A DNA stretch of 64,000 nucleotides from Bigelowiella natans CCMP2755 (lineage: Eukaryota > Protista > Cercozoa). The stretch covers positions 56,541-120,540 of the forward strand of contig ADNK01001071.1 in assembly GCA_000320545.1 (NCBI GenBank), in the 5' to 3' direction. A program made the position numbers and the translations under genes. Each line of letters opens with the position of its first letter. Position 1 is the stretch's first letter. A model generated the notes under the pieces. It ran no database searches. It was not told where the DNA came from and saw nothing but the letters and a program-made list of their open reading frames with translations. Positions 1 to 30,638 of this stretch are shown here, piece by piece.

Positions 1-3000
1 TGTTGTCGGTGTGGAGGTCGGCGCAGCAGTTGCTTGAAGAATTTTCCGTATTATTTTGTTGTTGAAGTCGGACAAGTAAAGCGGTCTAGCCCCGCGTGGA
101 TCCACGATACCGAAATATGGGAAGTTAAATCGAGCGATGTGCCCGTAGCCGTCACGAGCCACAGCTGCGACACCGATACCTGCGATGCTCTGTACAATCT
201 GCGTCTGCAGATCTATCGCCCTGATTTTGTTGTTGTTGCTATCCATCACGTAGAGCAACGGCGGCTCGCGACTCGGGTCGACAATCACATCATTTGGGCC
301 CCAGAACACAGCAGAGCTAATACTCCCGTCTGTGTAAGCGCTGCCAGCTCCAGGCAAGCCAGTAATTGTCGTGACTTCCTTGGTTAATAGATTGATCTTA
401 CGGATCGCGTGATTGTCTCGGTCCGCAACATACAGGGTCCTCGTACCGTACGATGTCTTGTGGTAGCCAAGGCCGACAGGATCGTTCCAGCGAGTATTTG
501 AAGCAGCCCCGTCTCGATATCCGGAAGACGTGCTACCGGCCAATACACCGGTATAGAACTGTCCTGCATACGTCCCCACCCCTGCTACAACCTCTCGGAT
601 TAAGTGATTGCTTTGGTCCGCGACGTAAATCTTGGTTATGGAGTTGACATCCTCAACAACGCAGTCCCGAGGGTTCCTCAGGCGTGAGGCCGTGCCGTAG
701 CCATTCGAACTTCCGTAGCTGCCGGTAGGATGGCCGGCGATCGTTGTGACTTCCATGGCAAAGAAGTTAAGCTTGCGGATTTTGTGGTTGTCACCGTCCA
801 CAACGAAGAGATTCTTTGTCACCTTCTCGTAGCAAACTCCCACTGGATCATTAAACTGCGCAGTTGCAAAAGGGCCGTCGCGGTAGCCAGAGCTTGATCC
901 ACCAGCGAGCAAGAAGTTCGCCATGGTGTCCAACCTGAGATAGGTGCATGTGAGAAATGTTAAAACTTGCTATTCACACTGGGAGATTGACGGAAACACA
1001 AGGAACAGGAGAGAGGAAAGCAAAGAGAAACTAGGGGGATTATACGAACATTACAAAAAACACCCCTATATACGCAGAAAGAAGTGAAAGTGACCGTGTT
1101 TGGTAGATCTTATGGGCTGCAGTGTAGTATAAGTAGCCCGTAGCGACGTTGATATCCATTCCTCGTGGCTTATCCGAACCCAGGTTGATCACTGAAGTGA
1201 CCATAGCATTTGAAAGAGTTATCGGGGAACCACGGTTGGTGGGCCCGCCGGTTGGGGATTGGGTCATTGTCGGTACAAGGGTTGTCGGGTTCGCAGTGGG
1301 AGAAAGTGTTGCGGATGACAGCACTCGGATTGCTTTGTTACTGTAGTCTAGGTAGAAGACGGAGCGAAGACCCTTGGGGTTGAATACCAGGTCCCTGGCG
1401 TTGTCCATCCTAACAAGATTACCCTTTCCGTCTATAATCCCCCCACTCGACGAGCCCAAAATCGAATATACTTTGTCGGTCAACGAGTCGTACAAGCGAA
1501 TCTTATCACCAGTATTTTCCCCCACGAAGACGTAGGGCGGGCTTCGAGTGTTGTCGACCGCGACACTAATCGGTCGATTAAAGCGCGCGACGCGGCCTGG
1601 ACCATCTCTCTGGCCATGACTGTTGACTGTCCCCGCAACTGTTTTCACCTCCATAGTCTGCGTGTCAATCTGGCGCAGCAGCGAGTATTGGTAATCAGCA
1701 ACATATAAAACGGGATAGCCCTTGCTGACGTCAACTGTGACGTCATATGGGGAGTAGAAGCGGCAATGTGTGCCCACGCCGTCGCGGACCCCGGCATTTC
1801 TATCCCCAGCGATAGTGTCGACGACGGTTCCCATACTAGAAATGTCGATAACTCGTATTTTGTGGTAGCCGCGGTCGGCGACATACAGCATTGTACGCCC
1901 CATGCTCGGCTTGTACATTGCCATGCCCTCCGGATAGTAGAACCTCGCTTGGAAGGCGGCTCCATCATTGTAACCGCTGCCTCCCCCCGCAAGGATTTTC
2001 ACAACCTTTCGGTCTAGATCAACGACGCGAATCCTGTGGTTGTAGTTATCAACCACGTACACATATCGTTCACCAGGCCTACGTTTTTCATAAACCAAGC
2101 CTCGTGGAGAATAGAAACGGGCTATGGATAGCTGCCCATCCATGAGCGCAGCAGACCCACTCCCGGCGACTCTCGCAACTGATTGGTCCACAAGGTTGAC
2201 GCGCCGAATTATGTGATCACTGCAGCTGACGTACATCATCTCGTTCTCCTTGTCGTAATCCATTTGGAACATTGTGAATGTTGCATGGAACTTCGTTGTT
2301 GATTCTGCAGATTCGAATGGCCGGCCTGATTAACATACAAGAATGGGGAAAGAGTGGGAGGAGAAAATATAAGCATAGGAAATATAACTAGGATGGATAC
2401 TTTTGATCACCACCACCACCTCACTCTTTTTCGTGAGGACTACTTTCATTCTCACTGTCATTTCATACAACCTCTGGCAGTCGGCGTTGTTGTAGGTGTC
2501 CGAGTAATTGTGGGGACGGATGTCGGAGAAGCGGTTACATTCCGATAAACTAAAGTCCTGACAGCTTGGTTGGTACAATCAGTAACGTAAAGCTTCCGTT
2601 CCCCTCGTTTGTCAAAGGCCATTCCCCATAGATAACCAAACTGGGCAGTGCCTCCAAACCCGTCCATCTGCGGCATATTCGATCCGACGCCAGCAACACT
2701 GTTGACCTCGTTAGTCAGAAGATCTAGAGAACGGACCTTGTAATTGCCGTACTCGCTCACGTACAACAGGGGTGGATTCCGGGTTGGATCGATCTCGAGG
2801 AAATGAGGCTTGGAGAACAGTGCAATGGTTCCAATGCCATCTCGGCCCCCAACAACACTGCGTCGGCCTGCGATCGTCGTAACCTGTTGATTTGCCAAGT
2901 TGACCCGCCGTATCCGGTGGTAGGTGTAGCCGGTGACATAGACACTGTTCTCATAGTGAACGATACCCGTTGGGTAGTGGAAGCGTGCATGTGTGGTATG

Positions 3001-3850
3001 CCCGTCAAAGTAGCCGCAGGATCCCGAACCCGCCACGCGACTCACGATCACACCGTACAGGTTGATAGTGAGGACCCTCACAAGACAATTGGTTCGATCC
3101 GCTACGTACACATATTTCGCTGTCGGCGCCACCTTGACGGAGACATCGTTAGGATTGCGGGAATCCTGAGGTGATCCCCGGGCCATCACCGTTACCATAA
3201 CTTCCAGTTGGATGACCAGCTAGCGTGGTGACTGCACGATTGGTCAAATCTATAAGCCTGATCTGATGCGAATTGTAGTCGGCAACGTACACTTGGTGCG
3301 CACTAGTTTCGGGGTCAACGACAAATTGCATCCCCGTAGGCTCGTTGAATCGCGCATTCTTAAGAGCGCCGTCAAAGTAGCCAGCCGTACCCGACCCAGC
3401 GACCACTACCACCTGTCCAGTCTTAAGGTCCATGCGCCGAATCCTGTCATCGACCGAGGAGATGTACAAGTTGTTTGAGGCCTCGTCAAGGGCCACGCCG
3501 CGAGGGCAGCCATTCGTCATCCCCCTTGTCGCTGTGTCAACGATTACGCGGTCTGCTCTCATGGTTTTGCCTCTCACGGAAGGAGCGCTGGTGGGATGAC
3601 AGGTGATTGTTGGTCCTATAGTGGTTGGGGTACGCGTGGGCGACACAGTACCTCCGTTTGCAAAACGAATTGTATTGGTAGATATATCTGTCCAATAGAT
3701 TGCACGCCCGGCCGCAGTGTCGAAGGTGGGGAAATAGGGAGAGTATACCCTGTAAATGTATGGCATGTGAGGTTTTGTTAAATGCATGTTTATCTATTCC
3801 AATTGAGGTGTATGCCAGGACAGAAACTAAATACGTACTCATAAAACCGA

Positions 3851-3893
<43 letters not shown>

Positions 3894-6800
3894 ATAAAAT
3901 AATAATAATGAATATATTTGTAGATATATATGTATATTATACATATTAAAGAGAGAGAGAAAGAGAGGGGGGGGGGGGGTGGAGGAGTTGACTTTGCAAT
4001 TTGGCCCTTGCCGTCGACTTGACCTCCCGATCCTGTTCCTGCAACAAGCCCGACCATTTGTGTCTTCAAATCGAGCGCTCTCACTCTATGACCACTGTAA
4101 TCACAGATGTACAAGACCGGCGGATTGCGCGTCTTATCCGCGGTGATGCCCCATGGATAGTAAAAGCGCGCCGTTGTCGCTCTGCCATCCCAATTGCCCC
4201 CGCTGCGAGCCTTGTTTGCAATGGTGGTGACCTGGCGAGCCTCGAGATTGATGGCCCTAATGTTGGAGTACTGGTAGTTTGTCACGTATACCCACGTGGT
4301 GCCACCGATTTCTGCAGAAGTTACTCCCACAGGATTGTAGAATCGTGAGTAGTCCGACGTACCGTCATAGTAACCAGCATTCCTGTTGCCCCCAATCCTG
4401 TGCACATACTTGCCATTTTTACCGATTTCAATCATTCTTATTTGGTGGTAGCTGCGATCGGTAACGAAGATGAGCGTGTTGCCTTTCGTTGATCCCTGTG
4501 TGGAGTGGAGCACGTCAACATCATGTGGATAGTTGAACTGGGCGTGCATAGCATGGCCGTCGCGATAGCCCCGGCCTCCGTCCCCTGCGACAATGTCTAC
4601 GATGCCTTTTTGCAGGTCGATGACGCGAACCTTGCTGTTGTACGAATCGGCCAAATACAGCTTCTGCCCGCCCCCGTAGTTGTCGTAGCACATACCCAAG
4701 GGGGTGTAAAACCTCGAATTTGTCATCACTCCATCGACAGATCCGCTTGCTATGCCACCAATGCGCTTAATAGAACCGTCTTTCATGCTGATCCGGCGAA
4801 TTGAATGGTCTGACATAGTCGCATAGATATACCTATTGACTGGGTCCATCGCGAGACCCTTGAACTGTGTGCTGTCCTTGATCAGTGTACCAGTCTGAGA
4901 ATAGGGTACCCACAACGGCATCGCTCGGTTCGTAGGCACTCTCGTGGGAGAGATGGTTTGTGTTGGAGCCAGGGTTGATGGAGAAGAGGTCGGGATGGAC
5001 ATGTTTCCGTATCCAACGGAACGAATCTTGTAATTACTGTAGTCCACGAAGAATAGCGTCCCAAGATTGTAGCTGGGGGAATAGACCATGCCCCATGGCC
5101 TATTCATGCGGGCGGAATGCGATGGTCCGTCGACGGCCTGGCCTATGACTCCAATGCCAGCGACTCTGCCAGACGACCTGTCCTTCATGTCGATCACTCT
5201 TATTATGCTGTTTGAGTAATCGCTGACGTACACAAACGGAGGACTTACTGAATCATCAACAGCTACCCCACGTGGATAATTGAACCGAGAATTGGTACCA
5301 ATCCCATCTCTATTGCTGGCGCTGTTGCGGTATCCCCCAATTGTAGTTACCTGTCCGTTCGCCATGTTGATGGCGCGGACGCAGTCGTAAGATCCCTCTG
5401 CAATAAACAGCATGCCAGTGCCTTGCTTGCTAAGCGCAATAGCCTGGGGATGATAGAAGTAGGCGCTATTCCTATGTCCGTCCCTAAAGCTACGGCTACT
5501 TCCAGCATATGTCGACACGATGCTTCCCATTGCTCCCTCCGTTATCAAACGAATTCGGTAGTTACTAAGGTCAGCGATATACAACTCCAAATCTCCAGTA
5601 GACTTTCGCCAGCCCACGATATCATAGGGGTTATAGAACAGTGCCGTCCGTGGCGACCCGTCCCTATACCCATAGCTTCCAGTGGGGTGCCCTGCAGCCT
5701 TCACCACAGTGCCACTGTTTAGGTTTACCTCTCGGATGTTGTGATATGAATCGCACACGTACAGTATTGGCTGCGCAAACGAATCGTCAACCCAAATACC
5801 CCTCGGGTTGTTAAAGCGCGCTGTCATGAGTGGCCCGTCATAATAGTGAGCACTTCCGTATCCGGCAATGTGTGTTCTTGTTCCGGTTTTAATATTGACC
5901 TTATAGATTTTGTCGTCGGCGTTGCCGTAGTAAATCTCATGTCGCTTATCAGATATTCCAATGTTGTATGTATAACCAGAGTAGGAATTCACTGCGTTGA
6001 CGTAACTGTTTGGGAGATTAAAGGGCTCCTTGCGCTCGGTGGGGGCAGAGGTCGGGTTAACAGTGAAAATCGGCCCTTGTGTCGACGGGGTCATCGTTGG
6101 AGAAAGTGTCAACTCGGATATCATACGCACGGCTCGGTTGTTATACTCGAAGATGTAAATCTTAGTGCCGTCTGGTGACACCTGCACACCCTGTGGATTG
6201 TAGAAGGCTGCTTTGGTACCCGGTCCATCGAAGTAGCCCGTAGCTCCTACGCCAGCTACAGTACCGACGGTCTGTGTGCTAAGGTCGATTGCACGAACCC
6301 AATGTGTGTTATAGTCGTTCACGTACAAAATGGGAGGGTTAACACTCCTGTCGATTCCTATCCCCCATGGTCTAGAGAACCTCGCCGAAAGCGCGCTCCC
6401 ATCCCTTTTGGAGTGGCTGTTGTAATACCCAGCAATGGTGTAGACTCTGTTGTTGTTGGTGTCAAGTTTGCGCACAATTGCCCCGTAGTAGTCGGTAATG
6501 TACAGCACTTCCTTAGCCTGCGATTCATCAATTGCGATAGAGGTCGGGTAGTAAAAATATGAGCTCAATGCAGGCCCGTCACGGCGACTTGCACTTCCAG
6601 TACCTGCAGCTCTTGTGACATCGACACCAAAGGGCGTCATCGTGATCTTGCGGATCATGTGGGATTGGTAGTCTGTGACCCAGACGTGCGTCACACCGTT
6701 TGGCCGCACACTGACCGCAACTTCTTTTGGATTGTAAAACCTGCATGACCATGGTTTTCCGTCAGTACTCCCTGCATTCCTACTTCCTGCGACGTGGTGT

Positions 6801-9800
6801 ACAGTTTGGTCGGTCAAGTCGATGCGGCGAATCTGGTGGTAGGATTCATCAACCACGTACAACCATTTCTTGCTGTTCCTTTCCGATAGTGCGAGTCCTC
6901 TTGGGTTGTAGAAGCGTGCATACGTGGCAGCACCATCATAGTAGCCGGCAGTTCCACTCCCAGCCAACCTTGTGGATAGTCCAGTGCCCATGTTGACCTC
7001 ATGGATTCTATGGTCGCTCCCAGCGACATACATGATCTGCCTCTCAAAGTCGATTGCACCTTTACCTCTTACATAGAAACTCGTAGTCTTGAAGACGGTG
7101 GAAACGCTCGAACGTCGTCCCCAAACTGGTAGCCTTCGGATAGTTGGCGGACCTATAGGAACTCCCGTAGGGCTTTGCGTTGCGACCCTCGTTGGGATAT
7201 AGATCTTCCGGATACAATTATTTGAGTAGTCAGCGACGTACAGGACAGTTGAGCGGTTTCGTGTGTCGCAGATGATTCCCCTCGGTCGGTAAAACGAACT
7301 GTACAGAGCAGGTCCATCCCTCATTGTCACATAGCGACCTTCCCCTGCGACAGTATTGACGATTCCAGTCTTTTGATCGAGCATGCGAATATCATGGTTA
7401 CTGTACTCGGTGGTGTATAGGTCGGGTGGATTTCTCGTCTTGTCTAGAGCAATTCCCCACACACTATAGAACCGAGCCTGGCTCCTGGGGCCATCGCGCT
7501 TACTGTTGCCGTTTTGGATGCCTGCGATAGTGTACACTCTACCGTTCCTTGTGTCGACTTTGCGTATTATGTCGTAGGTGTAATCCGCGACATACACATC
7601 AACATATTTGTCGGTTCTTTCATACACAGCGACGTCGCGTGGACTATAGAAGTACGAGCTGAGCGCCGGGCCGTCCCGTCTTCCAGCGCTGCCTGAACCG
7701 GCAACTGTTTCGATCACTCGATGGCCTGCCAAGAGTTTTACCACTCGAATCCGGTGGTTACTATAATCCGCAATGTAGAGGTCAGGCTCAGGCAGGTCGG
7801 CATTCCCAATAACATCCTAACAAGTCAAGAAACACATGCGTTAGTGAAGTAAGTATCACGAGTATTGTCAACATTGGCAGTGCAGCCCGTCAATCGAAGA
7901 ATCTCAGTCGACGGTAGCGAGTGCACGTCCCCTCATCACCATAAAATTCAATACAGCACCTCTTTTGGATGATTTGCCAACTTGGATCGGTGAATGGAGA
8001 TGCCATATGGATTGTAAAGCAGCGCATAGGTCGCAGGACCGTCACGGTAGCCGTAACTGGTACTTCCAGCCACTGTGAAAACCTCATCTCTTTGGATATC
8101 AATGCGACGAATGCGGTGATTGGATGGGTCTGCCACGTAGATAATGGGCCGCATGTTGCCACGGTCAATGGCCAAGCCAGCCGGGTTGTAAAAGCGTGCC
8201 GTCGTCATCTTACCATCGTAGTTCCCTGCAGATCCAGATCCAGCGAGCACTGTCATTAGCCGCGAGTCGAGGGAAAGCTTATGAATCTTATGATGGCTCG
8301 AGGAAAAATAGATTACGTTCTCTTCCTCGTCTAGACAAAGCCCGTTGATCCCCGTGGTGTACTTGAAGACCGTATCAGTAACGACCTGGTCGACGCGGAG
8401 AGGTATGCCTCGTTTAGTCGGTGACAAAGTCGGCACCGCCGTGACAACTGGCATTTTTGTAGTAGGTGCACTGGTTTGCGTGTCTGCTACGTAGCTGATC
8501 TCTCGGAAGGAGTACGTGCCTCGGTCAACTACGTAGAGTACCCTCTTTCCATCCGGCTTTCGGCGGAAAATGACTTGACTAGGTTGGTAAAATTGAGCCT
8601 CGTACCTATTTTAGGAGATAAATGACCCTATGCATAATTTACAGTATAGCTCTATTTCGACACAGATATACTTCTGCATACACATGTGCATCCTTCTCCT
8701 TCCCATCATCTTCAATACTGCGCGCGCGCGCGCGCGCACACACACACACACACACAACACACACACACACACAAGGGCGTAAAGTGCTCATACCCAAAGC
8801 CATCCTTCGGTAATCTGTTGCTAGCTCCAGGATTATACCCTGCAACCAGGTAGGTTTTTTGCGTTGCAAGGTCGACACCACGCACACGATGATAAGTATA
8901 TCCAGCCGCGTAAAGAAATCCAGGACTTCTTGTGTTATCAATGGCCAAGCCCCACGGCCTGTGAAACCGTGCGTACGTGCCTCTACCATCACGTTGAGTC
9001 GCCGAATTGCCGTAGCCGGCGATGGTCGTGACCTGATTGCCAGTCACATCGACCTTTCGGATGCAGTCATTTTCGAAATCGCCAATATAAAGCACAGTAT
9101 TTCCACCGCTATCGTCTACGACGATGCCGCGTGGATTACGAAAGTATGCATGGGTAAGGCGCCCATCTCGCCAGCCTGCAGGTCCATAACTGTTACCGCT
9201 GCCGGCGACGCGGGTGACATAGTCGAGAGAACCGTCACTTGGAATCGTAATCTTTCGGACCAGATGACCACTATAATCCACTGTGTAGAGCAAGGTACCC
9301 TCCGTTGGCTTCTTCTGCATTGTGAGCCCACTTGGGTAATAGAACCGCGCTTTAAGTGCGTATCCGTCCCAGAAACCATAGCTGCTTTCACCAGCTATGG
9401 TCAAACATTCACGCTTAGTCATGTCCAGCACTCGGATTCTATGGTATTGTCGGTCAGCAAAGTAAAACTTCACTTCCCCGTCAGCAGATCTGTCGAGGAC
9501 AACCCCTTCTACAGAGGTACTGAAACGGCATGTTGTAAACGGCCCATCATAATAGCCACTGCTGGTCCCTGCGATATTCTTCACGATGCCCGTGTCGGGG
9601 TTCATCGATCTCATTCTCGCGACAGAGTCAAAGAAGTAGAGGAGCTTATCATCCTCGTCCCAGACAGCTCCATTTGGATACCCCCCCGTGCTTCGCCCGA
9701 GGGTTCGCACGTTGGCCATCTCTGCAACCATTATGTCGCCGCGACCAGAGATAGCTGGCTGGAAGGTTGGACCGCTTGTGCCGGGAACTGGAGATCCTGT

Positions 9801-17591: not shown

Positions 17592-17628
<37 letters not shown>

Positions 17629-18488: not shown

Positions 18489-18528
<40 letters not shown>

Positions 18529-21500
18529 CGTATATACAGATATGATCGCGGAGTTGGCAGATGCAAAGAGAAATAAGAGATGAGGGGAAGATCATTTTTA
18601 TACCTGTTCCAGCGACGGTAGTAATCATCCTATTGACCACAGTCCCAAAACTGTTTAGAACAGGTGTGATTTTGCGGATCCTGTAGTTATACTCGTCGGC
18701 AACATATATATCTGGATGAGTCTTTGTCTTGTTGCGCCACAATGTTATGTCCATGGGGTAATTGAAGTACCTAAGTTTTAATAGCCCGGTCAGAAGTAGC
18801 CAAATCTCTCTCGCTCCCTTGCGCTCCCCCCCCCCCCTCTCTCTCTTTGTATGTGTGTGTGTGTGTGTGTGTGTGCGTTTCAAATGATTCTTACGCATAA
18901 GTTTGTGGTCCATCGCGGAAGCTGCGGGAGCCGGACCCAGCGATATGCTCTACGGTCTTCGTTTGAAAGTCATACATGCGAATCCGGTGGTTCCGGTAGT
19001 CAGCAATGTAGAGGTACTTATTCCCGTTTGAATGATAGTCCATTTCCAGTCCGCGAGGCTCGTAAAAGTGTGCGTAAGTCGGTGCGCCATCTCGGTAGCT
19101 TGCTGAACCAGAGCCTGCAAGGAGGGAAGAATAGAACCCCTTCGCCGTCAACGAGCGGATCTTTTGGTCGGAGCAAGACACGTACGCATCCCCAGTGATA
19201 GGGTCAATCTCGATGCCCCTAGGATACCATGATTCCGTGGTCATGGTGTTGACCTCTACTGTGTTCATCGTCATGATGTCGAATGATGCAGTCGGCACCT
19301 GGGTAGGTGTGACGGTAAAGATGCTCTTTGTCGGGGCGACGGTTGTTGGAGCATTCGTTGGACTTCGGGTTTGGGAATATACTGCCCTGAGCAGCGTGTT
19401 ACTGTAGTCTGAGACGTATATCCGTCTCATGGCTTGGTTCCATCCAATGTGGTACGGGTTATTGAACCTCGCGCGCGTGCCTAGACCATCAATTGCAGCC
19501 CCTGCCGTGTTGTAGCCTGCAACATGCAGAACTTGCTGGTTTGCAAGGTCGACAAGCCGGATGTTGTCATACTGATACTCGGAGACATAGAGGAAGGGCG
19601 GGTCACGCGATTTGTCGACAACAATGTCGCGAGGGTAATAAAATCTTGCGACCGTGCTGGCTCCATCGTTATAGCTTGCAGAGTTGCGGCCAGCAACTGT
19701 AGTCACTTCTCGTGCCATCAGATCGATCTTACGGATGCAATGATGATAACTGTCTACAACGAATAACATCACTCGATTGCTGACGCCTTCATAGACCTGG
19801 ATTCCCTCTGGATAATAGAACTGTGCCGAGGAAACCGGCCCATCTTTCCACGCTGTTCCTCCAGTTCCAGCCACCTGATACACCTCGACTGTGTGCGCAA
19901 CCGCCGGTGCGTAGCGCGTGCGGCGGATCTCACGAATGCGGTGGTTGTTACGGTCGGTCACATATAAGGTAGGCTGGTCTGACTGAGAGTTATTCCTGTA
20001 CAAAGTAATATCCCATGGGTAGTAGAACTTTGCGATCGACGCGCGGCCATCTCTCATGCCAGAGCCACTTGAGGCGTACGTTTCCGTCATACGAGTTTTG
20101 AGATCAATAACACGAATCCTGTGGTTGGTATAATCAGCGACGTATAGCTTATTGCTAGATGCATCGTTCTCGTCTAGGCAAAGGCCCTTGGGTGAGTAGA
20201 AGCGTGTCATCGTCGTAACACCATCGACAATACCGGCGCTGCCACTTCCTGCAATCAAGAGGACGGAGTGGTCATTTGGATTATACCGACGAATTCTATG
20301 GTCCGTGTGTGCGACATAGAGGAAGCCAGATTCAGAGACAGTAATTCCTGTAGGTGTGCTCTGGGCCCTCATCACGGTAGACACATCGGCAAGATCGTAG
20401 CGCAGCGGGTCTCCACGAAGAGTCGGAGATACGGTTGGTGAGACTGTGTCAGTAGGCGAGGAAGTAACAGGCACGCGAGTGGGCGAGGTGGTCACACGTT
20501 TGAGCTGACGAATAAGGCCGTTCGAATAGTCTGCGACATAGGTGATGCGCTCGCCACGGAGGTCCGTGCAGATGCCGAAGGGGTTACTGAATCGCGCCTT
20601 GACCCCGAAACCGTCAATAGCGTTTCCTTGCTGTTTCATTCCCGCTGCCGTGTAAACTTGTTGGGAGAGGAGATCGACAGCCCTAACGTTGTCGTTGCCA
20701 GACTCGGTGACGTAAATCACTGGAGGCACGCGCGTCGAGTCAACGCTCAGATAATACGGACTGTTGAATCGCGCGGTTGCGATCGAGCCGTCATAGTATC
20801 CTGAGCTGTAACCTGCAACTGTTGTGACCTCATCGCGGGTCATATCGACCCTACGGATCTTATGGTTGCTCGTGTCTACCACGAACAGCACTACTCGCGA
20901 CTTGGCATCACGCTGGTACACTTCGACGTCGCGCGGGTAGTAGAAGTACGCGTACGTTAGCGGGCCATCACGAAAGCTGGCCGCTCCAGACCCTGCGGCT
21001 CTATGCAACTTGCCATTGCGGATCTCCCGGATACGATGATTGTACATGTCGGCAACAAACAAACGTGGATTCGATCCGAGCGTAAGATCCTCGACCTTGT
21101 AGTACGCACCATTGCTGAGCGTTTTGTACGCGGTGCCCGTATAGCCGGCATGCAAGCAGCACTTTCCCGGCTCGGCGTGTGTCTTGTCATGGACCCAGAA
21201 GTGCGTGCAGGCTGTCAACGATGCCTTGCACAGGTCAAGGCAGTGCTGGATCTCATCGTGGTAACCAGATGTTGGAAAGTCAGTCGAGCAAGAGATGTTG
21301 ACCGGATTGGCCGGGAACCTGTTGAATGCGAACTCACGCCGCGCCACTTTGGGGTCCGCTGAATAGCGCTTCAACGAGATTCCTGAGGGGTAGTAGAGCC
21401 TGCCAGGGCTCGTGGCAATGCCATCTGAGTACCCAGCCGAACCAGTTCCCGCGACATGATGAACGAGGTTGTTTACTTGATCAATCTTTCGAACCTTGTG

Positions 21501-22697
21501 AGAATTGTGATCTACGACATAAATGTCGGGAGATCCGGAGGTCCCTGTATAATCAAGGGCAACGCCATGCGGGTTGTAGAACTGCGCGGTCATCGAGTCG
21601 CCATCGCGGCTACCATGGCCCCCCTGCCCCGCAACTACGAAGATGCGCTTGAAAGAATCAATTTTGTACAATTTGTCGTCACCAACTGACGAGTAATATA
21701 TGTCGCCATTTTGCTTGTCCATTGTGATGCACATGGGCGAGTTGAGGCCCTTGTAATGTGTACGGACTTCCATACTTTCTGCAATCATTGGCGAACCCCG
21801 GTATCTAATTTGTGGGGGAGACGGGAAGGTATGGCAATGAGGAATCGAGAATCATAACATAATCACATTCAATGCGAAGATTCGAAATCAAGAGCAATAA
21901 TGCCTGCACATACACACGTACACAACAGAGGCAGGTATGCCACAACAGTTGCCGCATGCATAAAACAGGCACTGCATGATCATCAATGACGCCGTATCTG
22001 CTACTTACGTTGGAGACACGGTGTTGCTCAGGTAGATGCTAGGGGAGATGGTTGTTGGTACTGACGTCGGACTTAATGTTTGCGACCGAAGAGATCGAAT
22101 CGCGTAGTTGTTATACTCTGCGACGTACAAAGTCCTCGTTGTTCGGTCAAACCCTGCCGAGAATGGCTCGTTAAACCTTGCAGTGGGGCCCTTACCGTCG
22201 ATCCGACTTGCTGCGCCGTTTCCTGCCACACGATATACCATCCCCAACCTTGGATCAACCGCGCGTACATCGTCGTGGCCAGTTGTGGTAACATAGACAA
22301 AGGGAGGCGTCCTCGACGTGTCAAGACCGATTGCCATCGGATATGTGAATTTGGCCGTGTGCGCTTGCCCGTCAACAAGTCCGGCACTGCCTGGAGTACC
22401 AGCGATGGTGGTGACGATATTTGTGGCCAGGTTTACGGCACGCACTGTATGGCTATTGTAGTTTGCAACATAGAGGGTGGGGGGTGAGCCGGGGTTGGTA
22501 AAGGGGTCCATCTTTAAGTCGGTCGGGTAGTAGAAGCGAGCAGTTGCAACCTAAAAGAAGATAGATGACAGTCATTTTCTGTGCCGTTACCTCGTTAACA
22601 GTCAAATCTCGACTCCATTATCATTTTATAAAATAGCATTACTAACAAAAAATATTCCCTCTCACGTACTCACCAAACTATCTGGATCCAGATTTAA

Positions 22698-22755
<58 letters not shown>

Positions 22756-25700
22756 ATGCGCATATATCCATTCTAACATTTTCTGACTTGGCAGCAACTG
22801 CTGTATTCAGCACCGCTGCACTACCGCACAAAGCTAGTACCGGGCCATCGATGTTGCCTGCACTGCCAGTTCCAGCTGCCGTTGTGACCTGACTTGATTG
22901 TGTATCACACTGCCTGATCTTATTACTTGTACGATCCGCGACATAGAGCTTGACGAAGTTAGATCCCGCAGTACGGTGAACAACAACCGCGTATGGAGAG
23001 TAGAAACGAGCAGCGCTAATCGGTCCATCATTGGAGCCGGCACTGCCAGTTCCAAACGCAACGTTGACCTTGCAGCCCGTGCAAAGTGCAATTTCCCTGA
23101 TCTTGTGGTTGCTTTCATCCGCAACATACACCCTATTTTGGCTAGGCTTCGTGGGGTGTTGATCTAGAGCTACGCCACGCGGATTGTAGAAACGGGAGTT
23201 TGTTGGGTTTCCGTCTGTACTTCCACTGGTCGAACCAGCGATGAGGAGGATACTCTGATCCTTGGTGTTGACCATGCGAATCTTGTGATCCGTCGCTGAG
23301 AAGTAGATCTTGCCGCTGCCATCTGGGACGACATAGATTCCCTTAATTTTGAAGCGCGAGTCGTACATAGCCGTGAACACCTCAGACTTCAGATCGTAAA
23401 AAGGATCCCTGCGCAATGAAGGCGTAGTAGTTGGGTTGACAGTGCTGGTTGGGCATTTCGTCCTTGGAGCACGAGTTGGTGAAGCGGTCCCAGCATCCTG
23501 GATGCGTCTAACGACTTTGTTAGAGTAGCTGGAAAGGTAGATCTTCCTTGTCGTTGGGTGTATAACTAAGCCATAGCAATCACTAAATCTCGCAAGATTT
23601 CCTTTCCCATCAATCGGAGCTCCTCCAACACCTAACCCAGCAACTCGCTCCACCAAGTTTGTGCCTAGATCAACCAGGCGCACAACGTCAGTTCCGTAGT
23701 CAAACGTAAAGATCATCGGGGGATCGCGCGTCTCATCAACAGAGATAGCCCTCGGAAAGTTAAAGGTCGATGTCAGCGGGTTGCCGTCGACTGAACCCGT
23801 AACCCCTGTTCCCGCGATTGTCGTCACAACTTGTGTCTGCAGGTTGAGCATCCTCACCGCGTGATTTTGGGTGTCAGCAATATAAAGGTTTGCCATTCCA
23901 TTGGACTTCACGTGCACATCAAGGCCTCCAGGAGACTTAAACTGTGCGCTTAAGGCAGGGCCGTCAATGAGCCCCGCGGTGCTACCCCCCGCGACCGTCG
24001 AAACAATTGAATTGTGGATCAAGCGAATTCTGTTGTTTCCATAATCCGCAACGTACACTTTCGGCGCTGACATGGTTGCGGTCCTAAGCACTGACACGTC
24101 GTAGGGGTACGAGAAGTGGGAATTGGCAGCCGGTCCGTCGCCCAAACTGTTACTCCCCGTTCCCGCAGCTGTGTACACTCTATCGTCGTAGAAAGAGTAC
24201 CTGCAACAGCAAATGCACATGGGGAAAAGAGAGAAGTTTTTTTTATGCAGAAGCGCGACGAAATAATTTGAATTCAGTGTGGAATGTAAGATTTTTTACA
24301 TTACCTTCGAATGCGGTGGTTATTTTTGTCAGCGATGTAAATTTCAGATCTGTATTGTGTGACGTAGTCGAAATCGCATGACATCGGCACATAAAATCTA
24401 GCTGACAAAGGCGCTCCGTTGGTCGCCCCGGCGCTTCCAGTCCCCATAAATGTTGAAAGAACTTGATTCGCAAGGGAAAGAGTCCGGATCCTGTTGTCGT
24501 TGCATGTAAGATAGAGTACGTTGTTTCTCTTGTCAATGCACATTCCGTTCACAGTCGTGCCAATAGTAGATTCCGTGAAGACCATCTGAAGTGGGGTTAG
24601 TTCAAAGTCACGCGCATATGAAAGTTATTCCTTGTCCTATTTCGAGATATTAGTATTTTTGTGCGGTAGTGGTAATAGCGGGAACCGCTGCAGGACTAAG
24701 CGGGTGAGGATAGGGGGCGTGAACGCTCAGTGTTGCATCAAGTAATTACCACTTCGCTTTGTCTGAATCGCGCGCCTCGCATTGACGGCGCGCTAGTTGG
24801 GTTCATAGTGTCAGTTGGACATCTTGTTGGATTGAACACCTAATCATTACAAATTCAACCAATAATCGCTCAGCACACACGCAGGCTCGCACGTTTGACG
24901 CACACAGAAGGCAAAGAGGAGATGGAACGGGACAAATAAAGAAGAAGGAGGGCACACAAGAGTCAAAAGGAGAGGAATGTGATAGACTATCAATCGCTAT
25001 CGCTGCTGCCAATTTCTTTCCTATGTTGCTGCTATTGGGAGAGAGAATTACCGGTGACCGTGTGGGAGACATGGTCTCTTGTCCGATGAACCGTATCTTA
25101 GCATCACTGGTGTCCATGACGTAGATAGCCTTGTGGCGATTAATGCTCACATCGGCCGCAATGCCACGGAGACTGTAGAAGCGCGCAAGGGTCGCCGGCC
25201 CGTCGATTGCTGTTCCACTGCTCATAGGTGTCTTACCCGCGATGGTAGTAACTTGATTGCCCAAAATCATGTCGATCCTCCTCACCACAGGGTTTGAGGT
25301 GGACACGACGTAAAGCTGATTCTGGAACGGGTCAATTGAGATGCGGAACGGGTTGTTGAAGCGCGCAGTCGCATAGGGGCCGTCGAGGTGACCGGAAGAC
25401 CCTGAGCCCGCAACTGTGGTTACCTGCTGGCCCGCAATATCGATCATCCGGATGCGGTGGTTGCTCCTGTCTGCGACGAAGAGCTTGGGGAGAGGAGTTG
25501 TTGTGTTGTGGCACACGATCCCAGATGGATAGCGGAACTTTGCGACATGAAGATGGCCGTCCATGAACCCACTCGATCCTGTCAGCGTCGTGACAACCGT
25601 CCCCATCGCCTTGACATCCAGCGCGCGGATCACGTGGTTGCTAAAATCTGCAACATAGATGGTCTTGAAAGTCAAAGAACCATCACCGTCGGGGTCAATG

Positions 25701-26213
25701 CACAAATCGTACGGGTTGTTAAACCGGGCACTAAGAGCCATCCCGTCGGTCCGACCTGCGCCGAACATACCGGCGATGGTGTCAACAGATTTTGTCGCCA
25801 TGTCCAACCGCTTCACGACATGATATTGAATGTCTGATACATATATTTGCGGTTTTGGCAGCGAATTGTCGATAGCTATGCCATAGAGATTGCCGAACCG
25901 AGCCGATCCCATAGCGCCATCCATGTAGCCTTGGGTTCCTGAGCCCGCGACTTGAAGCTGGAAACCTGTGACGGGGTTGATCTTGTGGATCCGCCGATCA
26001 CTCGAACAGATGTAGATATCTCCCGACTTATCGTCGATAACCATCCCCTGAGGCGTTGCTACAGAGGAAACTGTCTTCACCTGCAGCGTGTTCCGGTTGA
26101 ACGGTATTTGAGGCGAAATCGTCGGATACTCTGAGGATGGTGATTATGTGAGCATGAGGTTATTCAAAAGATCTTATGGTAAGATTCACAAAAGACACAC
26201 ATTAAAATATTTA

Positions 26214-26249
<36 letters not shown>

Positions 26250-29200
26250 CTAAAGTATCTACAACACGGCAAGTAACCAGTGCGGAAAGGCTGCATAGTT
26301 GTAGGAGTTGAGGAGCCTACAAGATCCTCCGCAATCTTCCGCACAGCTTTGTTGCTAGTGTCGGCGACGTAGAGGAACGTCTGTCCTCTAAGACTCACGA
26401 CAGTGTCCATTGGATTGTTAAAGCGGGATTCCTTCGCATAACCGTCTCGCAGATTCATTGGTCTTCCTACTCCAGCGACACGGTCAACCTTCCTTGTCTT
26501 GAGGTCAAAGCTGCGGATCATTGAATTGCTTTCATCTGTTACGTAGAGGATCGCTGGCGACCGATTACTGTCGATCTGGATTCCGCGCGGGTTGAAAAAC
26601 TTGGCAAGCGTCGCCGCCCCATCTACCATTCCGTACGAGTTGCGAACGCCAGCGAGCGTGTTTACCGAATACGTACGAAGGTTAACTTCTCGGATGAGGT
26701 GGGAGTTGTACTCAGTCACGTACAAGATGGGAGCCTGGCTGCCATCCGGGGTGACACATAAAGAAACCGGGTGGGAAAGCTTCGCAGTGGATAGCGAGCC
26801 GTCCACTTGCCCCGATGTGCTTCCGACGACGGTTTCAACCTCGCGCGTCATCGATAGCTGTGAGACCATCCTGATCCTATGGTTGTTATAGTCGGCGACG
26901 TATATGTGAGGCCCCTCCGTCCCCGTTTTGATGTGCACGGCAACGTCTTTCGGAGCATTGAAACGCGCAGCAGGGCCGTTGCCATCGGCGTATGCCCCAG
27001 AAGCCTTGCCTGCGATCGTGTCCATGGTTTCTGCCTCAATGTCCATCATGCGGACGCTGTGGTAGTTGTCATCAGCGATGAACAGCAAGCTTTTCCCTTT
27101 CCAACGGACGAAGTCAAGCCCCTCGGCTGGACCAATCCGAGAATTCATGGCAGCCTAAAATACAAATGACAGGAGCGCGAGATCAAATCAACTCTCTCTC
27201 AACTTAACAGACAGGCAATAGAAAGGGGGACTAGAAAGAAGGGCGTAAAAGCAGCAAGACGGCTATCGCCATTTTCGATTACAATTGGCACTACTCATAC
27301 TGCAACTTGTATACATCTCATACCCCGTCAATACAGCCAGCAGAGCCCGTGCCGGCTATAACTTTGTGCGTCTGGTCTCCGGGCTTAACCATCCTGAGCT
27401 TGTAATCTGACGTAACGAGGTATATCCTCCCCGTTTCCGGGTCCATCGTTATGCTCTGCGGATTCATGATACTGGCGGTCGTCGTCGTAATCGCATCCAG
27501 CGCATGGAGGCCGATGCCACGGCTGGTTGGCGCAGATGTACCCTTTTGAGGCGACCTAGTCACAGGAGAGACAGAGGGTGCCCCAGCGGCTGTTCCCTGT
27601 TTGACGGTGCGAATGCGGCCATTGTTCATGTCAAGAACAAATACAGTTTTTGTGGCGCTATCGACAGATATCTCCCGTAGGTAATTAAAACGTGCTGTTG
27701 ATCCAGGGCCGTCGCGGGCAGTCCCTAGCTCGGTTGTTCCTATGGATATGAAGGCCGCCCATTCCGACATGAGGGATTAGGGTAATATAATTATGATATA
27801 TCGAAAATACACATACGCGCGCGCGCGCGCGCACACACACACACAAACTATATGTATGATAGAGAAAGCATGTGTGCCTACTTTTGCGCAAGCAGTAAAT
27901 TACACAAAGTGGTGAGGATGCACGAGATTCAGACATACAGTTGGGCTGCCTAACACTCTCCCTCTCCTACTAACTGCTGCTAATACTATAAAGCATGTAC
28001 TGACCTGCAACAAGCACGGTTTGCTGGGTAGAAAGGTCGATACAGCGTACCATGTGATTCCCATATTCAGAAATGTAGAGATTGGGCGGGGTGACTGACG
28101 TATCAGCTACAATCCCGTAGGGTTGGGTGAACTGTGCTAAACTTGCACTTCCATCGATTTCGCCAGGAGCCCCTGATATCCCAGCCAGCGTCGAGACCTT
28201 CGGAGGAAATGGAAATGCAACAGAGAAAATGGAGATTAGTATAAATCGATGCCAACCGAATAGGTAACATGATCACATAAAAATCTCAAGCCCGTTGAAG
28301 ACTCCAGTCACCGCCGATGGAGAATGATAAAATGTAACTGGCGACGATTGATGAAGAATCACATGTATCACTCGTCCCTTATTTCCGACCCTAGCCTACC
28401 TGTTGCGTGGCGAAATCAAGTTTCCTGATGATATGGTTGGAAAAATCTGTAACGTAGAGGACAGGATTGGCAGCCGCAGAATTCTCAAGTGTGAGACTAT
28501 TAGGGCTGTTGAACGTCGCTGTCGAAAAGGCGCCGTTTGCGGAGCCTGCTGATCCTCCTGCAACTGTATCAATAGTACTCGCGGCGGGGTTGAAAACACG
28601 AATTGCGTGATTATTTGAATCCGCGATGTAAATCTTAGTAGTGCCAGAGTAGACGTGCAGGGCCAGCTGTCGCGGCCGGTGCAGTGCGCTGCTCAGTGCA
28701 GGCCCATCGGATCTAGAATGTTTCACAAAGGAACAATTTAGCATATGGGATATGAATGGGAATTCAAGCTTATCGAGGAGAGAGGGAGGGTGAGGTTTTG
28801 CTGTGGGGGAAACTATTTTTGTCAGCCTAGCAACAAATTTATCAAATCCAAATTCACTTCCGCACCCCTTCCCCACTCTCTCTAACAGTTGTGTGCATGA
28901 GAGTAAGGAGGTGAATACAAGACCTTCCGGCAGAGCGTGTTCCAGCAACGCGATGTGTAGTCACGATTTCGATACCTAAAGCAGGGGCAGATAGCTCAGA
29001 TAACGTGTGTTTGCGGGACGAAGTGGAGTGTTGATTCAAGATCTTTTCAAAGTATAATAATTACAACAATAGCTATGATACTGCTGATGATGATGATGAT
29101 AATGATGACAATGACGATGTTTATAGTGGTTATGATGACGGTGAATAAACAAACCTCGCAGATTTCTTATATCAAGCTTTCGAATAAGGTGATTCGCAGA

Positions 29201-29346
29201 ATCCGCTACATAGAGAACCTACATTGTCGCAAACATGCAAAACCAGTCAGTTTTCGCGAAAGCACATCACAATATGCATTTTTCTTTACTATTGTGCACG
29301 AAATATTTTTATCGTAAGTTGAATGACTGTGTTGGTCTATGGTATT

Positions 29347-29384
<38 letters not shown>

Positions 29385-30329
29385 TTAGTACGCATTATAT
29401 TTGTCTGCTCATGGTCGAACCAGGTTGGAAAATTCCCTCGTTGCTACGACTCCTTCTGGTGTATTGAACTTGGACTGTTTGAAATACATTACCGAAGTGA
29501 GTACAGATCATCTCATCGCATTCTATAATAAGGAAACAAGTTGAAAGAGATAGTACGTGAGTTCCAATGCCGTCATTAAAACCAGCGGAACTCTTGGTCC
29601 CTGGTTAAGTGCACAAAACATATATTGAAATATTAGTTGAACAACTGCATCATGCAAAAGGAAAATACCTGCAAATGAACCCGCGAGGCCACTAGTTGGG
29701 TTCACACGATATATTTCATGCGTCTGAACAATGATGGTGGTTAGACCGTGGCGCTTGGAATACTTAATTCTATGATAAAGTCAATTACACTTGTGGTGAC
29801 GTAAAGGTATTTTCCCACAGAATCGAATACAGAGGCTTTCGTCCCCGAGAGGCTATGTCCGAAATAATTTAATTTTGGTAAAGAATCAATGAGCTCATTT
29901 GATTAAAAATTGTTGCGTGAAGATGTCAGACCTGGAGGTGAGACTGCTGACAATAGAGTTATCAGCAGTAATGACCCCGCCTATTCCAAAGCGAGAATAA
30001 AATGCGTTACAACAACTTTTTCATGAATTGGAGATTGAAGTCGGTACTTACTTCTGACATTAGGTGCAGCCTGTAACTGGACCTGCTGGATCAAGGACGC
30101 GGACGGCCATATATTCGTGGAGTCCGGGATAGATTGGCCCTGATACATCATCGTTAGAAATATTTTCATGTACAGTTGCATGAAGAACCTTTACTAAATT
30201 CCTTTTGTTAGAGCCTGCGCCTACAACAGATAATAATATACAGCAACATGAGGAATCAACGGTCTCAAGCTACATTTAATTATTCATACCATCAAAGTAG
30301 ATGACAAAGAATAGAGCTATCCAAATCAT
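1..30329 (-). CDS. Giant secreted tandem NHL-repeat (beta-propeller) protein, >=22 propeller modules with Pro/Thr linkers and PAN/Apple-like inserts; 3' end runs off the window
   Basis: Hand-spliced GT-AG model, exons 5'->3': 30290-30329, 30189-30220, 30052-30139, 29932-29980, 29789-29852, 29669-29723, 29557-29600, 29421-29474, 29155-29218, 28924-28975, 28400-28712, 28005-28197, 27324-27739, 26278-27154, 25052-26130, 24750-24839, 24305-24585, 22841-24200, 22009-22550, 18895-21804, 18604-18770, 17959-18433, 17718-17839, 17066-17575, 16589-16780, 16256-16448, 11672-16133, 8794-11540, 7960-8605, 3993-7816, 2472-3749, 1095-2325, 1-934. Phases join consistently apart from one extra base near 3160, giving ~25.4 kb CDS. 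The N-terminus MIWIALFFVIYFDGAGS looks like a signal peptide. The repeat consensus AGxGxxGxxDGxxxxARFxxPxGixxD...LYVADxxNHRIRxID is an NHL repeat. Confidence 0.92.
13845..14315 (-). other. Two tandem PAN/Apple-like Cys-rich domains inserted in propeller module 11 of the giant NHL protein
   Basis: Sequences CVDDFPASGYSSEVSFCAEQCRQEGSCKSFYAYAKPAGRCCMH and CTNSFSSSGQSDEVKYCADVCAGAYRCTSFWVYTRSYSSPGRCCMK show the C-x3-C-x5-C-x2-F...C-x-hydrophobic pattern typical of PAN/Apple domains. Confidence 0.7.
21090..21300 (-). other. Single PAN/Apple-like Cys-rich domain inserted in propeller module 6 of the giant NHL protein
   Basis: CSTDFPTSGYHDEIQHCLDLCKASLTACTHFWVHDKTHAEPGKCCLHAGY...GAYYKV, clearly homologous to the two inserts at 13845-14315. 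Confidence 0.7.
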
Positions 30330-30638
30330 CCTGGAGGCTGGTAGATGCTAGGAGGATCTCAGGCAGCTCGCAATAGGATCAGCCAGCTCCCATTGCCATT
30401 AGAGCCTCCATCCACGCTTCGTTTCAATAGTAGGGTTTGAATATACAGTGTTTATTTTGCAGGAGATTTTACCCATCCGTCAACAAATACGAGGCATTTC
30501 CAACAGGAATGTCGAATCATCAATGAAATCAGAGTATCTTGAGCGTAACTGGTCAAACAGCCTCGACAAACCAACACATCGCGTTTATGAGGGCCGTGTG
30601 GTGAAAACTTTTGTCGTCGTACATGGTTTAGCCTAATT

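Follow-up and report, generated by a model that had tools for sequence, protein, structure and literature searches.

A 41-exon algal gene encodes a chain of 30 NHL propellers that may form a secreted scaffold or adhesin

One intron-rich gene accounts for the minus-strand fragments

In the 64,000-nucleotide stretch of DNA analyzed here (the window), the minus strand of a marine alga carries one gene of approximately 40.7–41 kb, with approximately 41 exons and a product of approximately 11,480–11,500 amino acids. It occupies positions 1–30416 of the window and continues past base 1 to a stop codon at coordinate -10333 (G000:C2666:46208). The transcript starts at 30416, and the start codon (30327–30329, minus strand) is the first in-frame ATG behind an in-frame stop in the transcript contig. 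The gene model contains 41 exons and 40 GT..AG introns, and its mRNA measures 34,537 nt up to the stop codon.

Transcript evidence comes from run X1 of the same organism, whose label, "RNA?", is a guess. It holds a spliced contig of 34,764 nt, an assembly rather than a single molecule, that begins at 30416. Over the 6 kb in which we aligned this contig (24550–30549), it lacks 16 introns, all 16 of them GT..AG on the minus strand; the other 24 of the 40 introns are predictions. The contig exceeds the modelled mRNA to the stop by 227 nt, plausibly the 3′ UTR. X1 also contains 0.76 of sampled words from 16000–25999, where a model with all exons and no introns predicts 0.756, and a seawater metatranscriptome (X5) has three junctions in common with X1.

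The RNA-confirmed introns, numbered from the 5′ end and all on the minus strand, lie at 30221–30289 (intron 1), 30140–30188 (2; the shortest, at 49 nt), 29981–30051 (3), 29853–29931 (4), 29724–29788 (5), 29601–29668 (6), 29475–29556 (7), 29219–29420 (8), 28976–29154 (9), 28713–28923 (10), 28198–28399 (11; also in X5), 27740–28004 (12), 27155–27323 (13), 26131–26277 (14; linker between modules M2 and M3), 24840–25051 (15; M3–M4 linker, also in X5) and 24586–24749 (16; also in X5). The predicted introns begin with 24201–24304 (17), a GT..AG intron whose removal keeps the frame and completes M4, and 22551–22840 (18), which completes M5. Intron 19 (21805–22008), in the M5–M6 linker, has a GTAAGT donor and joins ..SPT to YRGSP. 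Introns 20 (18771–18894) and 21 (18434–18603) lie inside M8, and intron 22 (17840–17958) in its last blade, followed by a 122-nt exon encoding linker; intron 23 (17576–17717) leads from the M8–M9 linker to the start of M9. Inside M9 are introns 24 (16781–17065), 25 (16449–16588) and 26 (16134–16255). Single introns interrupt M13 (11541–11671; 27), M15 (8606–8793; 28), M16 (7817–7959; 29, with 7786 a compatible alternative acceptor) and M19 (3750–3992; 30, containing C, TA and GT microsatellites). Intron 31 (2326–2471), at the end of the M20–M21 linker, joins ..PTAR to GRPFE, and intron 32 (935–1094) falls in the first blade of M22. Across the gene, 33 of the 40 introns interrupt a propeller, so that the flanking exons could not stand alone.

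We conclude that the minus-strand fragments are one nuclear, intron-rich gene, whose spliced mRNA, about 34.8 kb long, encodes about 11,480 amino acids. The original prediction had spliced these open reading frames into one gene starting at ATG 30329, and the X1 contig, the open frame and the completeness of the modules after splicing all bear it out. Its in-window figures (32 introns, about 8,461 amino acids and 22 modules) are reproduced by the whole-gene model, and the expected continuation beyond base 1 adds 10.3 kb, bringing the total to 30 modules. Junction mapping, proposed as a check, is complete for introns 1–16; introns 17–32 in the window are predictions from the model.

The protein is a chain of 30 different six-bladed propellers

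After splicing, the protein contains 30 complete modules of approximately 345 amino acids, 22 of them in the window, each spanning the full 345-position profile at 277–487 bits. All NHL-module matches are on the minus strand, and their module coordinates run on in order across the breaks between open reading frames. M1 (27594–29975) has nine internal introns. It is followed by M2 (26324–27509), M3 (25076–26110; one exon), M4 (23492–24776), M5 (22080–23407), M6 (20493–21797), M7 (19371–20414), M8 (17815–19277), M9 (16031–17730), M10 (14885–15940), M11 (13235–14803), M12 (12125–13159), M13 (10875–12055), M14 (9810–10820), M15 (8488–9737), M16 (7196–8409), M17 (6110–7135), M18 (5009–6031), M19 (3656–4924), M20 (2542–3565), M21 (1310–2493) and M22 (31–1231); M23–M30 lie beyond base 1. 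Modules are 326–357 amino acids long, apart from two larger ones with Cys-rich, PAN-like inserts (one in M6, two in M11).

All 30 modules differ, with pairwise identities of 26–48%. We found no higher-order period among them and no nucleotide self-similarity of at least 150 nt, the sole matches being intronic (CA)n runs. As originally proposed, the array is old rather than a recent satellite expansion. Each of the seven large exons tested scored above the cut-off for Pfam NHL, and the blades, described as rich in Tyr and Arg, belong to a protein with 6.0% Tyr and 7.1% Arg overall. An AlphaFold2 model of M12 (pLDDT 93.9) has 24 strands in six blades, in keeping with the beads-on-a-string arrangement of six-repeat modules that had been predicted. 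Foldseek matched this module best to the lumenal NHL domain of SOQ1 (7djj; TM-score 0.83) and to human NHLRC2 (6g7w; 0.82), with TM-scores of 0.81–0.83 in both directions, rmsd of 2.5–2.8 Å and identities of 22–23%.

A one-nucleotide break in the assembled sequence interrupts module 20

The confirmed exons (24550–30549) read open from ATG 30329. The frame remains open for 7,513 codons, breaks, and is then open for a further 3,992. In the assembled sequence, the predicted single frame holds across the modelled introns but is broken once, at about 3165–3180 (minus strand), where a 1-nt break that is not an intron falls inside a conserved blade motif of M20: ..GDGPGITSGF is read in one frame and RNPNDVSV.. 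in the following one, at minus-strand TTCCCGC. Taken literally, the frame stops at 3151, five codons after the break, leaving 7,513 amino acids that end inside propeller 20.

If the break were real in this strain, the gene would be truncated or decaying and its last 10 modules would be untranslated 3′ sequence. The break does sit in the assembled sequence, with a stop close behind, and the assembly contains one copy of the locus, leaving no second allele for comparison. However, the 3,992 codons past it stay open over 11 exons and encode 10 complete modules scoring 277–342 bits, which would be unexpected in untranslated sequence unless the mutation were very recent. Furthermore, the canonical motif on both sides of the break has the look of a single-base assembly error. 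We consider truncation unlikely.

Leader, linkers and tail suggest an unanchored secreted protein

The protein begins with a short leader (MIWIALFFVIYFDGAG/S; 30214–30329, minus strand, split by intron 1) and a basic, Ser/Thr/Gln-rich stretch of approximately 38 amino acids, followed by 30 propellers with 29 linkers between them, a last linker and a 37-amino acid tail with three Cys. The leader is hydrophobic but lacks a basic n-region; we infer that it is a signal peptide directing the protein into the secretory pathway. Pro/Thr/Ser make up 54% of the linker residues (T 25%, P 18%, S 12%), matching the predicted composition, and the linkers measure 17–41 amino acids. Most end in PT-x-R-G-x-P, and the PT-x-R motif lies approximately 10 residues ahead of the first strand of the propeller.

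The insert in M6 (21132–21356, minus strand) shows a C-x3-C-x6-C ... G-x-C-C pattern and is PAN/apple-like; the two units in M11 (13826–14293, minus strand) match Pfam PAN_1 at E = 0.002 and PAN_4 at E = 0.0046, scores that fall short of the cut-offs. The structure model of the Cys-rich insert stayed at pLDDT <50, and a search of PDB sequences returned no match for it. The protein has no transmembrane segment (no 19-residue window reaches Kyte-Doolittle 1.6), and we found in it neither REJ nor GPS nor any other anchor. The C-terminus that the original prediction sought beyond the window is placed at the stop at -10333, behind the 37-residue tail, and no transmembrane segment or other anchor was found there.

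Relatives carry the same modules and linkers on receptor cores

The original prediction implied that this architecture was unique, which was overstated: at E ≤ 1e-30, a module profile search returned 36,127 cluster representatives. The top 150 of these are proteins of 0.9–7.5 kaa with 5–26 matched stretches each; among those 150, none comes near 30 complete modules and none has a tested function. Judging from these matches, multi-propeller NHL proteins appear to be common in sequence databases and uncharacterized.

The closest architecture appears to be one in which NHL modules and the same linkers are followed by REJ and GPS. In P0160, a metagenomic protein of 5,712 amino acids, a signal peptide and an F5/8-type C domain precede 10 NHL modules joined by PT..R linkers, with REJ and GPS after them; in a paralogue from the same genome (C2424; G000:C2424:72421-82000), REJ and GPS come after a pair of NHL modules and a PT linker. 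Four other contigs (C1287, C997, C1218 and C1301) have NHL and REJ matches on one strand, with NHL on the 5′ side. Like our gene, P0160 and the C2424 paralogue combine a signal-like N-terminal leader and a beads-on-a-string order with six-bladed modules of approximately 345 amino acids (about 32% identical to those described here) and Pro/Thr/Ser linkers of 26–31 amino acids ending in PT-x-R. Unlike our gene, which has 30 modules and ends after the last, they have 2–10 modules and run on into REJ and GPS, and P0160 also bears an F5/8-type C lectin domain at its N-terminus. Among 160 proteins examined, PT-x-R linkers occur only in P0160 and P0025. A literature search found no paper characterizing these NHL/PT-stalk/REJ/GPS relatives.

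Other known systems share only parts of the architecture. SOQ1 and NHLRC2 have the six blades, but each has only one propeller, attached to a thioredoxin-like domain, which a Pfam scan of the exons did not find here. Pfam TEN_NHL scores above cut-off on several exons, and teneurin NHL structures (9ifo, 6fb3) match by Foldseek at TM-scores of 0.67–0.79 and share an extracellular setting; teneurins, however, have one NHL propeller with EGF repeats, a YD shell, a toxin-like domain and a type II membrane anchor, none of which the Pfam scan found in the exons. Bacterial multi-NHL surface proteins likewise string many NHL blades or propellers together in a single, very long chain that is secreted or displayed at the surface, with 26–34% identity to these modules. 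They include T9SS-sorted, gliding-motility-associated, choice-of-anchor and LamG/FN3/Ig-containing types (for example MFZ4773744.1, 7,518 amino acids), and NHL arrays of up to 37 repeats have been described in giant Omnitrophota proteins (bioRxiv 10.64898/2026.06.07.730766). In contrast to our gene, these are prokaryotic and intron-free, carry bacterial sorting signals, and are mostly uninterrupted blade arrays or have other domains mixed in. Gel-forming and tethered mucins and the Pro/Thr linkers of cellulases are parallels in which Pro/Thr/Ser spacers separate the folded domains of very large secreted proteins, but unlike mucins the mass here is mainly folded propeller, the spacers are short, and there is no VWD, CK or SEA.

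Alternatives to an intact secreted chain

The linkers could also be processing sites in a polyprotein, with cleavage after the Arg of PT-x-R-G-x-P freeing up to 30 secreted propellers of approximately 38 kDa. Approximately 24 of the 29 linkers have a terminal PT-x-R with G, K, R, S or E as the next residue; some of these sites are dibasic (KR, RR, RK), and the Arg is conserved in P0160, a distant relative, and in the paralogue on C2424. Yet in both of these the same linkers tie modules to a membrane receptor core, and cleavage would shed the ectodomain. A lone Arg is a weak convertase site, and the motif's position may simply reflect capping of the propeller. Together, these points make processing quite improbable.

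We regard as very improbable that the chain is a membrane receptor ectodomain whose 3′ REJ/GPS/transmembrane exons went undetected, or that the leader and the following ~38 amino acids form a bipartite plastid signal for organelle targeting. The paralogues do have REJ/GPS behind their NHL modules, but here an in-frame stop lies at -10333, the transcript leaves only about 227 nt after it, and there is no REJ match on the gene's contig. The plastid version draws on the basic, hydroxyl-rich region between leader and M1 and on the top Foldseek match, SOQ1, a thylakoid-lumen protein. However, that match is at the level of fold (23% identity) and is equaled by human NHLRC2, and it seems implausible that plastid membranes would let through a 1.2-MDa chain carrying mucin-like linkers and disulfide-rich inserts.

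Finally, it is scarcely credible that several adjacent genes lie here, with transcripts ending and restarting inside the region and the long contig a chimera over neighbors: four introns do fall within linkers, where a break would spare the domains, and a contig spanning two genes would not prove a single transcript, but two of those four introns are spliced out in the X1 contig, its length equals the summed exons within 227 nt, most introns interrupt a propeller, the frame continues and neither intergenic space nor a stop or new start separates one module from the next, and the modules, with no common run of at least 150 nt, are too diverged for repeat-driven misassembly.

A candidate extracellular scaffold

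On balance, we favor as the probable reading that one gene encodes a secreted, unanchored NHL scaffold or adhesin of 30 propellers. The extracellular location that had been proposed receives indirect support from the hydrophobic leader, the lack of a transmembrane segment, the mucin-like Pro/Thr/Ser linkers, the PAN-like inserts (below Pfam cut-off) and the NHL-plus-linker modules upstream of REJ/GPS in relatives. With the leader acting as a signal peptide, the chain would enter the secretory pathway, and the linkers, by analogy with mucins and cellulase linkers, may be O-glycosylated, extended and protease-resistant spacers. The product would be a flexible beads-on-a-string filament approximately 0.3 μm long, of more than 1.2 MDa before glycans, presenting 30 different propeller faces outside the cell. 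Architecture and relatives suggest that it may serve in a cell coat or extracellular matrix, as an adhesin or a scaffold for multivalent binding. The protein may be an unanchored and much expanded derivative of the NHL-plus-PT-stalk ectodomain that appears to stand ahead of REJ/GPS (polycystin-1-like) receptor cores in this organism and a relative.

One gene encodes a chain of NHL propellers

Between positions 1 and 30416, the minus strand carries about 20 long open reading frames and many short ones. Pfam NHL (PF01436) matched all seven large exons scanned, at 30–105 bits against a cut-off of 20, with secondary matches to TEN_NHL, SGL and Arylesterase that are typical of six-bladed propellers. 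Iterating one module against all six-frame ORFs gave a 345-position module profile. Its matches lie on the minus strand only, and profile coordinates run on across successive ORFs (for example, 9–106 and then 108–343), as expected for exons of one gene. We followed the chain beyond base 1 in the upstream 40 kb of the contig, where its C-terminus had been proposed to lie. This sequence supplied eight more modules, then a stop at window coordinate −10333, and no anchor. The chain of propellers that had been read from the region's fragments is real and larger than in the original prediction, with 30 modules (M1–M30) rather than at least 22.

Four runs from the same organism and a single study (X1–X4), labelled "RNA?", contain 0.76 of the sampled words of 16000–25999, and several seawater metatranscriptomes contain 6–23% of them. 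Contigs and reads were aligned over the 6,000 letters of 24550–30549. Over this interval, X1 provides a single 34,764-nt contig on the minus strand with its first base at 30416, and it skips 16 segments, all placeable as GT..AG introns of 49–265 nt. For X1 the label RNA is a guess, and its contig is an assembly rather than a single molecule; the removal of introns argues for cDNA. The unspliced pieces in a further run, X10, mark it as DNA. A seawater metatranscriptome, X5, has three junctions in common with X1. Its spliced contig carries C where the assembly has T at position 28048 and is otherwise identical. The gene is transcribed in seawater by a variant from a natural population of the species. 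Spliced GT..AG introns also rule out bacterial contamination.

The exons set by the X1 contig are open from the ATG at 30329, the start originally proposed, and an in-frame stop precedes this codon within the transcript. Another ATG, at 30409–30411 on the minus strand and in a different frame, lies within the 87-nt 5′ UTR of the transcript contig and could represent an upstream ORF.

The other 24 introns of the gene are predictions: each is a GT..AG pair whose removal maintains the frame and makes the modules continuous again. The search was confined to gaps between module matches and combined with inspection by hand; it superseded an unrestricted search, ranked by total HMM score, that favoured over-long introns. 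The resulting model has 41 exons of 32–4,701 nt and 40 introns of 49–290 nt, 33 of them inside a propeller and four in linkers (two RNA-confirmed). Within the window it reproduces the 32 introns, 22 modules and ~8,461 aa claimed earlier; 16 of these introns are confirmed by the X1 junctions in 24550–30549 and the rest stand as predictions. From 30416 to the stop the model measures 34,537 nt, 227 nt shorter than the X1 contig. By arithmetic, it predicts a purely exonic fraction of 0.756 for the 31-mers of 16000–25999, against 0.76 observed. When spliced, all 30 modules span essentially the whole profile (277–487 bits). Single exons served as queries for database, family and fold searches, and the joined protein, with X at a frame break, was used to check the frame, count modules and compute the composition. 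Taken together, these results show one gene with a spliced transcript of ~34.8 kb, encoding 30 diverged NHL propellers on Pro/Thr/Ser (PT) linkers, with no anchor.

A one-base frame break in module M20

A canonical blade motif at ~3165–3180 is split between two frames by a one-base shift around minus-strand TTCCCGC, with GDGPGITSGF in one frame and RNPNDVSV in the next. Read literally, the ORF has 7,513 codons and ends at 3151. We think it unlikely that the protein is truncated here, because the 3,992 codons downstream are still open to the final stop. This long intact frame leads us to favour a mistake in the assembly, or else a mutation that arose very recently; in the former case the gene would hold a single ORF of ~11,480 aa. 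We rejected a short intron here, such as 3120–3189: it would remove part of a blade in which the conserved motif can be read on either side of the break. The locus is single-copy, with no second allele in the assembly, and an exact-pattern scan of metagenome contigs for an independent copy across the break returned 0 matches.

The modules are diverged six-bladed propellers

Modules measure 326–357 aa (n = 30) except for M6 (435 aa) and M11 (523 aa), both of which contain inserts. Pairwise identity among them is 26–48% (median 33%), with no higher-order period. Many introns contain (CA)n/(GT)n and (TA)n microsatellites, for example at 3750–3992, 17576–17717, 18771–18894, −7485 to −7444 and −9011 to −8941. 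The gene has no other repeats at the nucleotide level; a search for DNA self-matches of at least 150 nt found none besides these microsatellites. The earlier view that the modules are diverged at the nucleotide level is borne out: the array is old, and the absence of nucleotide self-similarity rules out both recent satellite expansion and assembly collapse.

The residues kept across modules are those of the NHL signature (Y-V-A-D, N-H-R-I-R, D-G and A-R-F-x-x-P), and we saw no further conserved cluster across modules hinting at a shared catalytic site. An AlphaFold2 model of one module, M12, has six four-stranded blades (24 strands, pLDDT 93.9, pTM 0.93), in agreement with the predicted six-repeat NHL module. 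Foldseek matched it to solved NHL domains at E = 1e-22, the closest folds being the SOQ1 lumenal NHL domain (TM 0.83) and NHLRC2 (0.82), followed by a teneurin-like protein.

The inserts comprise one unit in M6 and two in M11, and the three units have the pattern C-x3-C-x5/6-C...G-x-C-C in common. Their Pfam scores are sub-threshold for PAN_1 (18.4 bits, cut-off 21.4) and PAN_4 (17.4 bits, cut-off 27), and a profile of the three units found no sequence match in the PDB. In the AlphaFold2 model of M11 the propeller is confident and the insert has pLDDT <50.

Leader, linkers and C-terminus

The N-terminal leader, MIWIALFFVIYFDGAG followed by S, precedes ~38 aa that lead into M1. As a putative signal peptide, it has glycines at −3 and −1 and a hydrophobic core of 11 residues, with no basic n-region. 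The 29 linkers are 17–41 aa long and consist of x-P-T units (T 25%, P 18% and S 12% over 796 residues), a composition that, taken by itself, fits mucin-like Pro/Thr/Ser regions. R-G-D ends three linkers, M6–M7, M10–M11 and M14–M15 (~20440, 14830 and 9760), twice as PTLRGDP and once as SGRGDI; given the R-G motif of the linkers, it may be due to chance.

About 24 of the 29 linkers close with PT-x-R-G-x-P. Such regularity is what speaks for a polyprotein cut between R and G of PT-x-R-G into monomers, a fate we regard as quite improbable for this chain. In the bolder filament model discussed below, the same conserved sites may permit regulated fragmentation.

After M30 come the last PT linker and a 37-aa tail (−10220 to −10333). 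Three cysteines lie in and just after this linker and could form a site for intermolecular disulfides; elsewhere in the protein, Cys accounts for 0.7% of residues. No 19-residue window in the whole protein exceeds a Kyte-Doolittle hydrophobicity of 1.6.

Relatives and comparison with known NHL proteins

A profile of 14 single-exon modules retrieved 113,875 cluster representatives from the protein library at E ≤ 0.001, of which 36,127 also pass E ≤ 1e-30. The 150 strongest matches among these 36,127 are proteins of 0.9–7.5 kaa with 5–26 matched stretches, and those with a name or context are mostly bacterial surface proteins. The top match, an unrelated 4,013-aa blade array, scores 2,851 bits, against 200–330 bits for each of the ten modules of P0160, a metagenomic relative; no listed protein therefore nears 30 modules. 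The giant protein itself is not among these 150, from a library in which intron-rich eukaryotic genes are poorly represented. A 1,325-aa exon query found nothing above 34–35% identity, among proteins of 730–2,300 aa, and the ESM Atlas returned generic bacterial NHL clusters only. NHL arrays of up to 37 repeats have been described in giant Omnitrophota proteins (bioRxiv 10.64898/2026.06.07.730766). Our literature search found nothing relevant on algal poly-NHL proteins or on the combination of NHL and REJ.

Among 160 proteins examined, one cluster, P0160 (5,712 aa), has the same design. A signal-like leader, an F5/8-type C domain and ten complete modules are followed by REJ and GPS, and its PT linkers (26–31 aa) end in PT-x-R, as in the giant protein. 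It comes from an intron-poor, eukaryote-like metagenome scaffold. In another library protein, P0005 (3,591 aa, JGI, named "mucin-19"), short Thr-rich linkers lie between six-blade NHL modules. By eye, its C-terminal segment resembles the intramolecular-chaperone (peptidase S74) end of phage or giant-virus tail fibres, and the whole protein may be a viral fibre composed of NHL propellers.

In the B. natans genome, a paralogue locus on contig C2424 encodes two NHL modules with a PT-type linker, then REJ and GPS. On four other contigs (C1287, C997, C1218 and C1301), NHL matches lie 5′ to REJ matches and share their strand. Genome-wide, a six-frame search finds no fewer than 99 REJ matches that pass the Pfam cut-off. 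At the level of sequence, these loci suggest that the repertoire of polycystin-1/REJ-like receptors with NHL ectodomains is expanded. Another giant gene lies on a separate contig, C712, where the 10 kb of 122000–131999 form a single open frame. These 3,333 aa contain one NHL propeller and 14 or more IPT/TIG domains, and the genome search gives 11,943 aa for the open frame.

The giant protein departs from each of three known architectures. Teneurins combine a single NHL propeller with EGF repeats, a YD/Rhs shell, a C-terminal toxin-like domain and a type II anchor, whereas the seven exons scanned here match only NHL-type and generic six-bladed-propeller Pfam families. SOQ1 and NHLRC2 join a thioredoxin-like domain to one NHL propeller; the giant protein has 30 and no Trx in the Pfam scans. 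In polycystin-1/REJ-type receptors, REJ is followed by GPS and transmembrane segments, but none of those 99 REJ matches falls on the giant gene's contig, C2666, no hydrophobic 19-mer is present, and only ~227 nt of transcript follow the stop codon. A hidden anchor, or plastid targeting in place of secretion, is very improbable.

Discussion

That the region holds separate adjacent genes is scarcely credible. The single giant gene is an extreme case of a type that is widespread yet uncharacterised. We infer that its product enters secretion, that its linkers would carry O-glycans, and that it would act as an extended multivalent extracellular scaffold or adhesin, putatively derived from the ectodomain of a REJ/GPS receptor. 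A bolder and doubtful proposal, though still a conceivable one, is a "propeller mucin": a secreted, glycosylated filament of ~0.3 µm and >1.2 MDa that would consist of 30 different ligand-binding NHL propellers and serve as a main structural or adhesive material of the alga, for example in a cell coat, an aggregation matrix or threads for particle or prey capture. If true, it would represent an extracellular-matrix polymer of a new class in protists, drawn from a polycystin-like receptor ectodomain, and the longest tandem β-propeller array among the proteins listed.

To our knowledge, characterised NHL proteins have one propeller each; this gene places thirty in one chain. Gene callers will break the locus into ~20 fragments. 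The gene and transcript are now defined well enough for cloning, tagging and knockout, and they offer a natural test case for the folding, secretion and mechanics of long propeller strings. The gene also ties to a large unexplored set of NHL/PT-stalk/REJ/GPS receptors in the same genome. Together with transcription in seawater, this link could help to identify the ligands that NHL propellers let marine protists sense or bind.
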